A stretch of 63,412 nucleotides of DNA, filler included, from Octopus bimaculoides (Eukaryota), in assembly GCF_001194135.2 (NCBI RefSeq). It is 3 parts of 3 records of this genome, joined end to end, with 100 filler letters (N's around TTAATTAATTAA, not from the genome) between each part and the next. Parts side by side here need not be neighbours in the genome. Positions count along the whole stretch, not along the records: positions 1 to 24,279 come from NC_069008.1; 2 more parts are not named here. One strand, 5' to 3'. The notes under the pieces are model-generated. The model searched no databases. It was given only the letters and a program-made list of their open reading frames with translations, and was not told where the DNA came from. Of this stretch, positions 5,144 to 10,926 are shown in pieces (the first letter of the stretch is position 1; each line of letters starts with the position of its first letter). Made by a program: the position numbers and the translations under genes.

Positions 5144-5526
5144 ATGAAGAATCTTGTCCTCTTATTTACTTTCGTTGTGTGTCTGTGGCTGACTAAAGCA
5201 CATGATATGACAACAGTTTCACCAGATAATGATGATCTGATGTTAGACGTGACACCAGGTGGTGAAGGAGATGTTGTGACAGAAGGGCCGCCAGGTGATG
5301 ACGACGATGTTGTGACAGGAGAGCCGCCTATTCCTGAAGACGAAATTATGATAGCCGAGCCGCCAGATAATGAAGGGGATAATGTGACAGCAGAGGCGCC
5401 TGTTTATGATGAAGGTTTTGTGACAGCCGAGGAATATAATGTGACAATGGTGCCTCCAACTGAAGAAGGGTCTGAGGATGGAGGGGAAAGTCTTGCAACA
5501 GTGTTCAAACCATTCCAATGGCCTCA
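5144..5526 (+). CDS. EMI-cbEGF gene B exon 1: signal peptide + acidic Thr/Pro repeats
   Basis: accATG; MKNLVLLFTFVVCLWLTKA hydrophobic signal; D/E-rich repeats; donor CA/GTAAGT at 5527 (phase 2). Confidence 0.85.
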
Positions 5527-5703
5527 GTAAGTATTGTTACATCCACCGCAGTTTACCATTATTCCCCCACTCCATAGCGACCTGGAATTGTGTGCTTAGC
5601 CTCTTAGCGAACATCTGTTCCAAGTTTCTGGTGCTGATGTGGTCTTAATGGCTCCTGCACTCAGAATGGTCTGACCATTTTACAGTTCCTTCAAGACACG
5701 CCA

Positions 5704-5782
<79 letters not shown>

Positions 5783-6049
5783 ATACACACAAAGAAATGA
5801 ATAATGACACATGATGGATAAAAGTCAACTAATTACAGGTGTTTCTTACCCATTTTTTGAAATAGAAGAATGAGAATTATGTTTCATCTGATGATTACGG
5901 TTTTTACAACGATTAATGCATTCATTCTTCTATTTAAAAAAAAATGCGTAAGAAACAGTTAAAACGAGTTGACAGTTATCCTTCGTCTGTTATCATTCAT
6001 TTGATTATAATACACCATAGAGATTTACGATACGTCGGAAACCCTATAT

Positions 6050-6210
6050 ATGACGGGCTTCATTCAGTTTCTGCCTACCAAATCCACTCGCAAAACATCG
6101 GTCAGTCCGAGGCTACAGTAAAAGAAATTTGTCCAGAGTGCCACGCAGTTGGACTGAACCTGAAACCACGTGGTTGGATAGCCATCTTCTAAACATATAG
6201 CCACGCCTGT
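6050..6210 (-). mobile_element. tRNA-derived SINE (family 1) head
   Basis: gggcttcattcagtttctgcctaccaaatccactc...gccacgcagttggactgaacc, homologous to other copies. Confidence 0.7.
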
Positions 6211-6347
6211 CCAGTTGTGTGTTTGTCAGTCAGTCTCTCTCTCTCTCTCTCTCTCTCTCGCTCACATTAATTATCTGTCTTTCTATCTATCGATCGATCC
6301 ATGCATCCATTCACCCATTCATCTATCTATCTATCTATCTACCCACA

Positions 6348-6425
<78 letters not shown>

Positions 6426-7173
6426 CCCACATACCCATCTATCTATCTATCTATCTATATATNNNNNNNNNNNNNNNNNNNNNNNNNNNNNNNNNNNNNN
6501 NNNNNNNNNNNNNNNNNNNNNNNNNNNNNNNNNNNNNNNNNNNNNNNNNNNNNNNNNNNNNNNNNNNNNNNNNNNNNNNNNNNNNNNNNNNNNNNNNNNN
6601 NNNNNNNNNNNNNNNNNNNNNNNNNNNNNNNNNNNNNNNNNNNNNNNNNNNNNNNNNNNNNNNNNNNNNNNNNNNNNNNNNNNNNNNNNNNNNNNNNNNN
6701 NNNNNNNNNNNNNNNNNNNNNNNNNNNNNNNNNNNNNNNNNNNNNNNNNNNNNNNNNNNNNNNNNNNNNNNNNNNNNNNNNNNNNNNNNNNNNNNNNNNN
6801 NNNNNNNNNNNNNNNNNNNNNNNNNNNNNNNNNNNNNNNNNNNNNNNNNNNNNNNNNNNNNNNNNNNNNNNNNNNNNNNNNNNNNNNNNNNNNNNNNNNN
6901 NNNNNNNNNNNNNNNNNNNNNNNNNNNNNNNNNNNNNNNNNNNNNNNNNNNNNNNNNNNNNNNNNNNNNNNNNNNNNNNNNNNNNNNNNNNNNNNNNNNN
7001 NNNNNNNNNNNNNNNNNNATTATTATAGAAAAATAATAACGCCACACAGTGGTTATTTTTTGAGAAGTCCACTGTGTGGCGTTATTATTTTTCTATAATA
7101 ATGCCCTTTATATAAATATAAACGAATATATATATATATATTTATATATCGCATCTCTCATTTTTCTTCACAG

Positions 7174-7263
7174 CGGATGGTGTTATTACCGATGCCCCAA
7201 ACGTGTAACCTATAGGCAATCGTATTGGTCCACGTGTGGACGAAGAAGGTGCAGAAAATACAG
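7174..7263 (+). CDS. EMI-cbEGF gene B exon 2 (EMI domain first half)
   Basis: tttttcttcacAG acceptor, AG/GTAAAT donor, 90 nt, phase 2-2: (H)GWCYYRCPKRVTYRQSYWSTCGRRRCRKY(R); phase matches exons 1 and 3. Confidence 0.85.
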
Positions 7264-8035
7264 GTAAATACGAAGCCACCTCTTTTCCTCCTTCTTACTA
7301 CTTAAAAAAAAACAAAACAGGGTAAACTTTTAGAATAATCGTACAAAGGTATTCACAATAATGTAAAACCCAAACGAATGGCAGTTTTGTCCTCTTCCGC
7401 CATTTTGAAACCCCTTTCATTTGTTTATTTCCCTGTTTATGGATCCCTCCAATCTTCCCCAACTCGTGATAGGTTGTTCGTCCACTTATCCAAATGTTGA
7501 GGTCTGCCTTCCTGTCCCCATCGCTTCATCTCCTGGTCCCTGTAGAATCTTGCAAACCACCCACCCACCCATACACTCCTACTCACCATAATCACAAAAA
7601 CCCACACATACGCACACACACTCACACACACACACACACATGAATATGCAGAATACATACATACAAACGTACGCACATATATATATATATTTACATACGC
7701 AGACACACACACATGCATACATACATGAATACACACACTTATATGCATACATACATACATACATACATACATACATACATACATACATACATACATACAT
7801 GTGTATGCACACGCACATTGACCCACACACATGCGCACAAACAAACAAAAAGAACGCAGCTCGGTTAACGAACGGAGTCAACGACAATCGAAAAGGTTGC
7901 AAGACATAACGCAGATTTTAGGGAAAATAAGCAAGTAAATGAGTGGAAACTTTACCAGTGCGTGTGTTAAATAATAAGGCACTAAAAGAGAGAATGGCTC
8001 TCCCCAGACACAACAATACATGTATATACATGCGC

Positions 8036-8068
<33 letters not shown>

Positions 8069-8250: not shown

Positions 8251-8637
8251 GTAAGAAACATGGATTTAGTACGATGCAGGAAATTATTATATGCACAACG
8301 GATTCCACTTTCCCGTTACATAACTTTGCATTTCCTGCGGTTTAATCTATTTTTACCTGAACGATGTTCGTCCGCAATGACTGGCTTTGAGCAGCCATTG
8401 TCATTCCTTTGCTCTAAGATGACATAATCAGTAGAGCGTCAATAAAGAAGCTGCTTCGCAGTATTTAATCGAGTATTTATCTCTTTCGGTTCTGATTTCA
8501 AAATCCGCTGAGGTGGATTCCAATCTTCATCTTTACGGGGTCAATAAATTATTGATTAAATTCCTCTCCTTAACATTTCTCTCTTTCTACCTGAATCAAG
8601 AACGTATTTTATTCTTTATTTGTTTTTCTTTTTATAG

Positions 8638-8757
8638 ATATAAACGAATGCTTACGTCCCGGAAGAGTCTGTAGCCATATATGTATCAACACACCCGGAT
8701 CGTACTTCTGCATGTGTAGACATGGTTTCCAATTAGTTGGGGGACGTTACTGCAAGG
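8638..8757 (+). CDS. EMI-cbEGF gene B exon 4 (cbEGF1)
   Basis: tttatAG / GTAAGT, phase 1-1; [40 protein letters not shown] fits the cbEGF consensus D-x-N-E-C...C-x-N-x-x-G-S-Y-x-C. Confidence 0.92.
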
Positions 8758-9263
8758 GTAAGTTTGTCATTTCACTATATTTTNNNNNNNNNNNNNNNNN
8801 NNNNNNNNNNNNNNNNNNNNNNNNNNNNNNNNNNNNNNNNNNNNNNNNNNNNNNNNNNNNNNNNNNNNNNNNNNNNNNNNNNTATATAATACAAAGAATA
8901 TATATGCATGTATACACACATATATGTACATAAATCTACATGTGTATATAGATGCATATTTGGGTACAGGACGTTAGAACAATGAAATACAGACCACGGA
9001 ACGAACACATAGGAAAACAAATAGCCACTTGCAATTAATCCTTCGTCAGCTGCCTCTATTTTAACTAGACGCTTCGAAGATAAGGCAGAACGTACTCTAG
9101 AATAGTCTCTTCCTGAGTAGTGGATCGACCCACTAAACAGAGGATTCCAAGGTGGCAAACACAAACCAAGACAGGAAAAATGGACAGTGAAAACAACATT
9201 GAAAAGCCGTACGGCCAAACGCGAATCTGATGTAGAACGCTAACAGTTCGTCTCGCTTTCATA

Positions 9264-9352
<89 letters not shown>

Positions 9353-9979
9353 GATATATAGTCCACAAATGAAATCCAGATATTCTCCATGTAGAAGACA
9401 ATCGTTCTTAAAAGGTTCAAACTTAGACATCAACGTCTGTGCAGGTCCTCATTCTACAAAGTGAAGGAAGGTTATCAAAAGGATCAGATTGAGCGGGTTC
9501 AGATGAAATAATGCAGATAAAACAAATCAGACACGTCACATACACTAAATATATCAAATACGACAATTACAAAATATACAAAATATATGTATAAATGCAA
9601 AACGGGAGAAAGCAACAGGCGGAAGCTTCCAGGTTATGAAGTTTTATGCATAAATCTTAAGATATTTATATCAATAGGTCCAACATAGAGAGAATGAAAA
9701 AGACAGAGAGAACTAAAGGAGTGGAAGAAAGGTGTCATAAGGCAAACAGCCGTTTCTGGGGATGCGGTGATCCAGCCAACATTATCATGGATTTCTGAAC
9801 CTCTTGGAACAACTGTTGGACTTATAACAACCTTTTCCCATCCCTTTAATTTTACCTGTATTCTTGTATTCTGTATAAGTTGGACCTCTTAATGTAAATC
9901 TCTATACATTTATATTTAAAACAAGTCATCATCTTAAGGTTTCCAACTTTTGTTTCTTATTGTTTTGCATATTTACATA

Positions 9980-10360
9980 TGAGGGGGACCCAAAAGAAGC
10001 CGGAATTGTGCAAAATATTATCTTCACTTTGTTTTATACGTTTGCAGTTTTATCACCTTCAAAGTATTCTCCATTTGAAGCGAACCACTAGTCAAGGCGC
10101 GTTTTTCTGTATTCGAAGCAGTCGTGTTTTTTTCTCACCTGTTCCACGACTTTCATCACCAGTGATGACCTTTGAAAAATTGTTCTTTCATTTCACGACA
10201 CGAATCCACTCATGGCTGCTTTTGAACTTCCCTGAGCAAGGAACGCACAAATTTTGCGGCAACTTTTTTTCATTCGATATTTCGTCACTGGAAACTCGTT
10301 GGAAGGAATTCCGGGATGCAGCGGTTATCTCAACGAATCGGTCCATTGTTCAGTGACGGT
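9980..10360 (-). mobile_element. internally deleted mariner remnant in intron 4 of gene B
   Basis: TA-TGAGGGGGACCCAAAAGAAGCCGGAAT end; minus-strand fragments KVITGDES and WFASNGEYFEGD. Confidence 0.7.
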
Positions 10361-10386
10361 TGTTAAATGATAACGAGAATGGTAGC

Positions 10387-10429
<43 letters not shown>

Positions 10430-10690
10430 GTATATATATATATATATTTCTGTGGGTGTAGTGTATTCATGAATATGTATTTGATCGGGAGGTCATGATA
10501 GAAAACATTGGCTGGTTGTGCAAAGACTGACCTGATGCCAACCAACAGCTTTAACCACAGATACTCCCTAGACTTTTATTTGAATCCTTTACGGAAAGGG
10601 CTATGGGTTTGTCCTAATACCAAAACTCTCACATCTGTTTTTTTTATATATATTATTACTCACGTATGTTTCCCTTTTTTTTATTTTCAG

Positions 10691-10926
10691 ATATTGATGA
10701 ATGCAAGTGCAACATGCACTACTGTCCTCCTCCTTACCACTGTTTCAACACATATGGATCCTACATGTGCCATTGCCCCCACGGATTTAAACCCAACGGA
10801 AATTGGTGCTACTGGATGTCTCGAGGAAAATCCCGAAACGCAGTGCCAGGAAAACCAAGTGTCATACCAAAGTTTGAGCAAGTTAAAAAACAACAATTGA
10901 AACCCATCACCAAAAGCAAACCATAG
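10691..10926 (+). CDS. EMI-cbEGF gene B exon 5 (cbEGF2 + basic tail, stop)
   Basis: ttattttcAG acceptor; DIDECKCNMHYCPPPYHCFNTYGSYMCHCPHGFKPNGNWC...KSKP*; the five exons sum to 912 nt = 303 aa + stop. Candidate AATAAA at 11443-11448. Confidence 0.92.

Follow-up and report, generated by a model that had tools for sequence, protein, structure and literature searches.

An acidic repeat region joined to a hyper-cationic EMI-like domain in a secreted protein of Octopus

Introduction

How a single chain comes to carry a long, almost purely acidic segment immediately ahead of an intensely cationic, cysteine-rich module, and what such a chain might be for, is the question raised by a gene of Octopus bimaculoides encoding a secreted protein with calcium-binding EGF (cbEGF) domains. 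The gene lies in the window analysed here, by which we mean the whole stretch of 63,412 nucleotides, filler included, assembled from three parts of NCBI RefSeq assembly GCF_001194135.2, the first of which (positions 1 to 24,279) comes from NC_069008.1. A preliminary description had proposed an EMI domain for the cationic module and had considered antimicrobial, polyanion-binding, matrix and adhesive roles. The gene is intact, functional and specific to the Octopus lineage. Its parts are of known kinds (an EMI-type domain, cbEGF domains, an acidic repeat); what is new is the compact, hyper-cationic form of the EMI-like domain with its eight cysteines, the constant pairing of this domain with an acidic repeat, the restriction to Octopus, and exons that diverge faster than introns.

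Charge segregation and the acidic repeat region

The layout is of the secreted type that had been described: signal peptide, acidic region, cationic eight-cysteine module, two cbEGF domains and a basic tail. Residues 21-128 contain 30 Asp or Glu and a single Lys, and residues 129-185 contain 20 Arg or Lys (18 of them Arg), one Asp, nine Tyr or Trp, and eight Cys spaced C-x3-C-x13-C-x4-C-x13-C-x2-CC-x11-C, exactly as first counted. The cumulative-charge range along the mature chain is 31; none of 10,000 residue shuffles reached this value (10.0 ± 2.4, maximum 21). The N-region has an isoelectric point (pI) of 4.05 and the remainder one of 9.8. Expressed as net charge, the acidic region carries -28 and the EMI-like domain +19 within 54 residues, and the whole mature protein is approximately neutral (net +2, pI 7.75).

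The polyacidic block owes its existence to a coding tandem repeat in exon 1 (Table 1), reported by Tandem Repeats Finder (TRF) with a period of 36, 70% matches and no indels. In the AlphaFold2 (AF2) model of the ortholog from O. sinensis the N-region has a predicted local distance difference test (pLDDT) score below 40, which indicates disorder. With two N-x-T sequons and repeated V-T-x-E-P-P motifs, features that would suit O-glycosylation, the acidic region is probably glycosylated. The signal peptide and the FQWP motif are conserved in the ortholog.

The cationic module as an EMI-like domain

The Pfam EMI model (PF07546, gathering threshold 25 bits) matched neither the window protein nor its isolated domain, even at E<=10. 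No relative passed the threshold either; the only Pfam family to give any signal was EMI, against the domain of the paralog P0122 (9.8 bits, E 1.9, profile positions 11-69 of 69). Profile-profile comparison was more informative. With hhalign we set an eight-sequence profile of the octopus domain against the PF07546-annotated EMI domains of MEGF10/11 and EGFL7, and recovered the relation to genuine EMI domains with a probability of 88.4% (E 2.8e-6, score 33.7, z about 9.6). Column shuffles scored 10.6 ± 2.4 with a maximum of 17.9, 0 of 200 reaching the real score, and the same octopus profile gave 0.15% against cbEGF domains. By type, EGFL7-type EMI domains were closest (67.6% vs 22% for the MEGF type). 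The alignment extends from C4 over YRxxYR and CC-x-G-[FWY] to the final Cys, and global mode adds C1 and C3; the motifs encoded by exon 3 are among the portions that align with genuine EMI domains. Because the Pfam model fails to recognise the domain we call it EMI-like, not a bona fide member: of the original proposal the relationship stands and the family assignment does not. Our reading of these comparisons is that the module is probably a compact, divergent, EMI-derived domain.

EMI domains are described as having about 80 residues and seven conserved Cys with three disulfides, a CC ahead of G-[WYF], and a final Cys (PMC13326518; bioRxiv 10.64898/2026.05.13.724420); models show antiparallel strands and three disulfides (PMC11949838; bioRxiv 10.64898/2026.05.13.724420). 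They mediate multimerisation, and that of EMILIN-3 binds heparin (PMC13326518). Members of PF07546 (EMILIN/Multimerin, EMID, MEGF10/11 and Draper-type proteins) resemble the octopus proteins in that the domain is the first folded module, is present in a single copy, and is disulfide-rich and, in models, antiparallel beta. The octopus domain differs from them in its compressed N-terminal half, with C1-x3-C2 as against about x10, and in an extra Cys three residues ahead of the CC. Eight Cys instead of six or seven would likely allow a fourth disulfide. Arg and Lys make up 37% of the octopus domain and 12-15% of canonical EMI domains (an approximately 2.5-fold difference), and net charges of +3 to +8 in the latter bear out the earlier remark that known EMI domains are far less basic.

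EGFL7 and EGFL8 are the closest in overall design, being small, secreted proteins with a signal peptide, one N-terminal EMI-type domain and then EGF modules; EGFL7 also shares the Arg/Tyr-rich core, YRxxYR, CC-x-G-W and the final Cys, and its EMI domain gave the octopus domain its best profile-profile match. EGFL7, however, lacks the acidic extension, and its EMI domain is of about 72 residues with six Cys and a net charge of +7 to +8, in contrast to 54 residues, eight Cys and +19 in octopus. The octopus proteins possess two to eight cbEGF domains and a Lys-rich tail with a VIPK motif.

The AF2 model of the ortholog's domain, built on a seven-sequence alignment, has pLDDT values of 80-90 and shows two long antiparallel strands (13-24 and 35-46) plus a short hairpin, in agreement with the published description of EMI models; the fold expected of an EMI domain is a twisted antiparallel beta-sheet. 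Foldseek comparison of the domain-only model with the PDB gave no significant match (best E 1.7), which is explained by the lack of any solved EMI structure. PDB sequence searches with the domain profile, and with an EMILIN-1 EMI sequence, returned nothing.

Two side observations concern possible modification. The columns K-x-x-[ST]-Y (KRVTY at residues 137-141 of the window protein) hold a nearly invariant Ser or Thr in the first long strand, and further Ser or Thr residues lie five to six positions ahead of the CC. These residues sit approximately where EMI domains are O-fucosylated by FUT10/11 and are possible candidate O-fucose sites.

Calcium-binding EGF domains, tail and cysteine number

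Pfam EGF_CA (PF07645) recognised two stretches with 58 bits against a cut-off of 27 (E 1.1e-15, best stretch residues 186-217). Both domains fit the consensus D-x-[DN]-E-C / C-x-[DN]-x4-[FY]-x-C-x-C, EGF1 beginning DINEC and EGF2 DIDEC...CFNTYGSYMCHC. Foldseek with the full ortholog model found only EGF arrays (Notch, NELL, EMR2). Tandem cbEGF domains with an Asx-hydroxylation consensus are shared with fibulins, EFEMP2, fibrillins and LTBPs. No fibulin-type C-terminal module or TB domain was found, the Pfam scan of the full protein giving EGF-type families only, and database matches that carry PF22914 or PF00683 align over the cbEGF domains only (25-45% of the query). The fibulin- and fibrillin-type names given to these proteins are due to cbEGF similarity alone.

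The tail, the Lys-rich last 37 residues of the protein, reads MSRGKSRN...VIPKFEQVKKQQLKPITKSKP; its VIPK motif is common to the window protein, the O. sinensis ortholog (P0001), the O. vulgaris paralog P0002, and P0129. The mature window protein has 21 Cys, an odd number, as does the ortholog, and complete family members have 21, 21, 21 and 45. The odd totals arise because the last EGF domain carries a seventh Cys ('EC.C'; Cys232 in the window protein), conserved in P0001, P0002 and P0129. One Cys may thus be left free for intermolecular disulfide bonding.

Gene structure and assembly gaps

The coding sequence consists of five exons on the + strand (Table 1), 912 nt from the ATG at 5144 to the stop codon ending at 10926, and specifies a protein of 303 amino acids. 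All introns have GT/AG borders and the exon phases (0/2/2/1/1) are compatible, exon 1 ending in phase 2 at a GTAAGT donor. The symmetric phase of the EGF exon is in keeping with the variable number of EGF domains in the family, and the intron within the EMI-like domain has the same position in P0002. An exact-sequence look-up showed that the spliced product is letter-for-letter identical to XP_014776253.1 (UniRef A0A0L8H187), the O. bimaculoides "fibrillin-2(-like)" protein, so that an independent annotation joins the exons identically.

Table 1. Coordinates of the gene, its repeat, the adjoining assembly gaps and the neighbouring partial copy (positions along the window)
Feature	Position	Strand	Description
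Exon 1	5144-5526	+	Signal peptide, aa 1-20 (5144-5203); acidic, disordered Pro/Thr-containing region, aa 21-~122; 'PFQWP' lead-in
Coding tandem repeat	5255-5426	+	In exon 1; 36-bp (12-aa) unit, 4.8 copies, consensus ~PGDEEDVVTEEP
Assembly gap 1	6463-7018		Inside intron 1 (5527-7173)
Exon 2	7174-7263	+	First (N-terminal) half of the cationic EMI-like domain (GWCYYRCPKRVTYRQSYWSTCGRRRCRKY); begins and ends in phase 2
Exon 3	8168-8250	+	YRxxYR stretch, CC-x-G-F motif and last Cys of the EMI-like domain
Exon 4	8638-8757	+	Calcium-binding EGF 1 (begins DINEC); symmetric phase 1-1 exon
Assembly gap 2	8784-8882		Inside intron 4 (8758-10690), 26 nt past the exon 4 donor
Exon 5	10691-10926	+	Calcium-binding EGF 2 with seventh Cys (DIDECKCNMHYC...), Lys-rich tail, stop codon
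Copy B	142-2090	-	Inverted partial paralog; exons 3' 2090-2008, 4' 1277-1158, 5' 383-142, all AG/GT

Two assembly gaps fall inside introns, and the exons either side of both splice in frame. The closest homolog, XP_036355705.1 of O. sinensis (P0001, labelled "EFEMP2"), is taken as the ortholog. Its locus (L001) is free of gaps, is collinear with the window over the 5' flank, all introns and the 3' flank, and contains the same five exons with no additional one, which rules out an exon concealed in either gap. The true length of gap 2 may exceed that written, the O. sinensis interval being about 1.3 kb longer.

The introns are dense in microsatellites of the types (CT)n, (TCTA)n, (CA)n/(CATA)n, (TA)n and (GAT)n, located at 5707-5780, ~6300-6462, 7560-7800, 9268-9345 and 10385-10428. 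Since both gaps adjoin such arrays, the arrays probably caused them. Gap 1 is bordered on the left by (TCTA)n and on the right, from the first base past the gap, by a perfect 34-nt inverted repeat (7019-7102; arms 7019-7052 and 7069-7102, 16-nt loop), which may mark a terminus of a small transposable element or have arisen as a fold-back artefact of assembly.

An Octopus family

The domain profile was scored against 1.84 billion representative proteins at E<=1e-3, and matched five clusters only, from O. bimaculoides, O. sinensis or O. vulgaris; one of the five lacks an organism label, but its UniParc number is a neighbouring one. A word-indexed homolog search with a three-sequence domain alignment gave nothing. 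With P0002, P0125 and P0129 counted in, the family stands at nine proteins from three Octopus species, entered in databases as fibrillin-2, EFEMP2, fibulin-1, LTBP2-like, adhesion GPCR E2 and 'wall 2-like'. It is a small and quickly evolving family, constructed on the combination of EMI and cbEGF domains known from extracellular-matrix proteins such as EGFL7. No one-to-one bilaterian ortholog, EGFL7/8 included, was found, the full-length search beyond Octopus giving generic cbEGF proteins only. We found no paper that treats the gene or its relatives, nor any that cites their accession numbers. The proposal of an undescribed cephalopod family holds good to the extent that the family is uncharacterised; it is not unseen, its members having been predicted in databases under misleading names, and its range is Octopus-wide, not shown to be cephalopod-wide.

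Common to the family are the signal peptide (MKNLV.FLF.FVV.LW.), an acidic N-region, the cationic eight-Cys domain and two to eight cbEGF domains. The EMI-like domain is present once per protein, is the first folded domain in every member, and is parted from the signal peptide by the disordered acidic spacer. The latter is rich in Ser, Thr and Pro, ranges from 24 to 239 residues and from -4 to -82 in net charge, and in one member consists of about 240 residues of Asp/Glu/Ser repeats. The cationic domain has a net charge of +10 to +19, the window protein being the most cationic member. The acidic-then-cationic order is kept throughout, and the net charge of the mature proteins varies from -61 to +24.

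Divergence between species

Despite their collinear loci, the window protein and its O. sinensis ortholog are only 47-57% identical. Counting columns inside the collinear BLAST alignments, we found 78.2% identity in exon columns (545) vs 87.8% in non-coding columns (3865). The interior of exon 1 gave no DNA-level alignment with O. sinensis, and the acidic 36-bp repeat turns over between the species. Nei-Gojobori estimates for the pair, a comparison of selection that rests on two sequences, are 0.39 nonsynonymous (dN) and 0.57 synonymous (dS) substitutions per site, omega being 0.67 overall, with values of 1.5 for the tail and 0.4-0.7 for the folded domains. The dN value is about three times the non-coding distance (~0.13). 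Neither species has lost any of the 21 cysteines, and in both the reading frame, the splice sites and the calcium-binding consensus of the EGF domains are preserved. Exons that evolve faster than introns resemble the pattern seen in secreted venom, immune and reproductive proteins, and the rapid turnover of sequence and repeats suggests that the protein forms an interface in contact with the environment or microbes.

Occurrence of the ortholog in skin mucus

In O. vulgaris, tandem mass tag (TMT) mass spectrometry of skin mucus quantified the ortholog, A0A7E6EL58 / LOC118761678 (PMC11431876, Data S3 and S4). In that paper's comparisons with senescent animals among the groups, its level was 3.1-5.5 fold higher in animals from the wild and from aquaria, and it is listed beside mucin-like proteins in a data set that also includes collagens and other matrix proteins (PMC11431876). 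No accession of a family paralog occurs in this 2024 data set, and no peptide spanning the exon 1-2 junction was found among the supplementary peptides searched. Those given under A0A7E6EL58 in Data S8 are in-silico digests (PMC11431876).

Two of the in-silico peptides, NLVLLTTFVLCLWVTTVASDNVTTK and HIPFQWPR, are not in the O. sinensis sequence P0001, so that the digest was probably made from the O. vulgaris genome model. In that case even O. vulgaris and O. sinensis, two very close species, would have different N-regions.

Proposed function and alternatives

What, then, might the protein do? The matrix or polyanion-binding role that was among the first suggestions would fit an ortholog found in skin mucus. 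We propose, and give an even chance to, a secreted organiser or electrostatic cross-linker of mucus or surface matrix that binds polyanions. In this scheme the skin epithelium would secrete the protein into mucus or the surface matrix, where the cationic EMI-like domain and the basic tail would bind polyanions such as the glycans of mucins and sulfated glycans, and possibly the surfaces of microbes. The two cbEGF domains would serve as a rigid, calcium-dependent rod or spacer, and the unpaired Cys would permit covalent dimerisation or attachment. The acidic repeat region would remain attached, so as to keep the arginine-rich domain in solution and disengaged while it is secreted, and may offer head-to-tail self-association tunable by salt and calcium.

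Several points weigh against this proposal. The mucus evidence belongs to the ortholog, not to the O. bimaculoides gene, and is at protein-group level from one study; a smaller O. vulgaris mucus data set of 2023 contains neither the ortholog nor any other member of the family. Putative polyanion binding is something we infer from charge alone. The balance of charge is not conserved across the family, which leaves the 'chaperone' role of the acidic region uncertain and argues against strict auto-neutralisation as first suggested. Four relatives have basic sites directly before the first Cys (KR in P0001, P0123 and P0124, RRSR in P0122), so that some members may lose their acidic region by cleavage. 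A dN/dS below 1, and a dS (0.5) higher than the divergence of introns, could reflect relaxed constraint or gene conversion between paralogs instead of adaptation. Lastly, the AF2 models were built on only seven sequences, and a solved EMI structure with which to compare them does not exist.

The octopus protein shares its anionic and cationic segments, made together in the secretory pathway, with two known systems: the defensin and cathelicidin prepropeptides, where the cationic part is disulfide-rich or basic, and the coacervating adhesive and cement pairs. Electrostatic self-neutralisation is plausible. The octopus protein differs from the adhesive pairs in that it carries both charges on one chain. 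A bolder version of the proposal, judged unlikely, has the proteins forming a rapidly diversifying Octopus family of mucosal 'charge-block' proteins that arose from an ordinary EMI-cbEGF matrix gene. In it a hyper-arginine, EMI-derived knot, binding polyanionic glycans or the surfaces of microbes, would act both in host defence and in condensing mucus, and the tunable acidic repeat would gate its activity or drive a reversible coacervation of skin mucus dependent on salt and calcium.

An alternative of comparable standing, likewise unlikely but serious, is a connective-tissue protein of matrix or signalling type such as EGFL7 or MAGP-1/2, in which the EMI-like domain would anchor the protein to fibrillin-type microfibrils or other matrix, the acidic half would capture ligands (growth factors or elastomer precursors), and the presence in mucus would be incidental, from sloughed tissue. 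MAGP-1 and MAGP-2 (MFAP2 and MFAP5) are small secreted glycoproteins with an acidic, Pro-rich, glycosylated N-half and a basic, Cys-rich C-half, the same functional design as here, and among known proteins they may be regarded as its nearest analogue in function. The domain by which they bind matrix resembles EMI in structure and binds fibrillin (bioRxiv 10.64898/2026.05.13.724420). The order of signal peptide, EMI, EGF and cbEGF is also that of EGFL7, to whose type the profile is nearest, and the collagens and other matrix proteins in the mucus data set would accord with such an origin. However, the MAGPs lack the CC motif and EGF domains, and have been described from vertebrates as slow-evolving components of microfibrils. 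The family profile gave an hhalign probability of 0.1% against residues ~90-183 of human MFAP2, a weak test, and orthology to EGFL7 or MAGP is not detectable. Slow evolution is the rule for conserved matrix and signalling proteins, whereas the exons of this gene outpace its introns; moreover, the family is restricted to Octopus, and the abundance of the ortholog in mucus tracks that of mucins.

Could the protein instead be the precursor of a cationic host-defence effector, its acidic propiece masking the module until a protease frees an antimicrobial or membrane-active part into the mucus? The extreme segregation of acidic and basic residues, the location of the ortholog in mucus, a rate of evolution typical of immune effectors, and the dibasic or furin-like sites of the four relatives just mentioned all speak for this. 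In the window protein, however, the acidic/cationic boundary is LATVFKPFQWPHGWC, which holds neither a dibasic nor an RxxR site. Every RxxR motif lies at residues 152-192, inside the disulfide-bonded domain or EGF1. With such motifs confined to folded domains, the defensin-style activation of the preliminary description is unsupported. The 'mature' portion, furthermore, would be no small peptide but a 175-residue, multidomain EGF protein of matrix type, and neither the length nor the charge of the propiece tracks the cationic charge within the family. We consider this explanation distinctly doubtful.

The divergence data raise the further question of whether the charge pattern has any role, or is the by-product of repeat expansion and an Arg/Tyr-rich EMI core in a young, weakly constrained family of drifting duplicates. 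Values of dN/dS of 0.67-0.81, a tandem-repeat N-region that varies from 24 to 239 residues among members, and the truncated-looking inverted copy B next to the gene are as such drift would leave them. Set against this, cysteines, EGF consensus, splice sites and frame have all survived in both species, every member keeps its acidic region ahead of its cationic one, and the ortholog is produced and secreted in amounts that mass spectrometry can detect, which together render drift improbable.

Least of all do we favour an acidic matrix protein that binds calcium in a mineralised or chitinous structure, be it the statolith, the stylet, the beak or the radula, akin to the molluscan Asp-rich EGF shell-matrix proteins: it would account for the union of a polyacidic repeat with calcium-binding EGF domains, and for the paralog with about 240 residues of Asp/Glu/Ser repeats, but is made very improbable by the ortholog's presence in skin mucus, by the lack of similarity to known shell-matrix families in the searches made, and by the hyper-cationic domain, which is not a known feature of such proteins.

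Copy B and other features of the window

Upstream of the gene lies the inverted partial paralog copy B (Table 1), which corresponds to XP_014774685.2, a truncated model of 159 amino acids. It is 4-5% diverged from the main gene, with a dS of 0.05 and a dN of 0.041, with the changes concentrated at the start of EGF2 (KDIDECKCNMHY vs RDFNECNCAHIY). Counterparts of exons 1 and 2 were not found for copy B and are either missing or concealed by the gap that adjoins it at 2203-2302, and no equivalent copy is present in the 10 kb upstream of the O. sinensis ortholog. Copy B could have arisen by recent partial duplication, could be a full gene that the gap interrupts, or could be an artefact of scaffolding; an alternative haplotype is unlikely, the exon 5 region being only 88% identical and the introns differing in length.

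An intronless open reading frame (ORF) of more than 1,580 codons occupies 13674-19062 on the - strand, interrupted only by an N gap (16998-17626). No Pfam domain was found in it at E<=0.01. Its 3' 3.4 kb are 90% identical at the DNA level to positions 24683-28099 of L001, and it is a conserved neighbour gene. A 79-bp direct repeat with 92% identity (996-1074 and 4521-4599) and an element of roughly 200 bp (20415-20748), of which there are several copies in L001, are probably fragments of transposable elements.

Significance

The skin mucus of cephalopods is a barely characterised barrier, few of whose structural or defensive proteins have been studied singly, and the gene described here is a concrete candidate. 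It presents opposite charge blocks on a single chain and builds them around EMI, a domain of poorly understood biochemistry, in an extreme form with 37% Arg/Lys. More generally, the family illustrates that lineage-specific secreted proteins can hide behind generic 'fibrillin/fibulin-like' annotation, that such a family can diverge faster in its exons than in its introns, and that a coding minisatellite can yield a polyacidic domain. Were the protein to act by electrostatic cross-linking or coacervation, it would be relevant to research on biomaterials and mucosal immunity; and if the broader notion of a mucosal 'charge-block' family were true, these octopus proteins would count as a novel class of mucosal effectors or biomaterial proteins in invertebrates.

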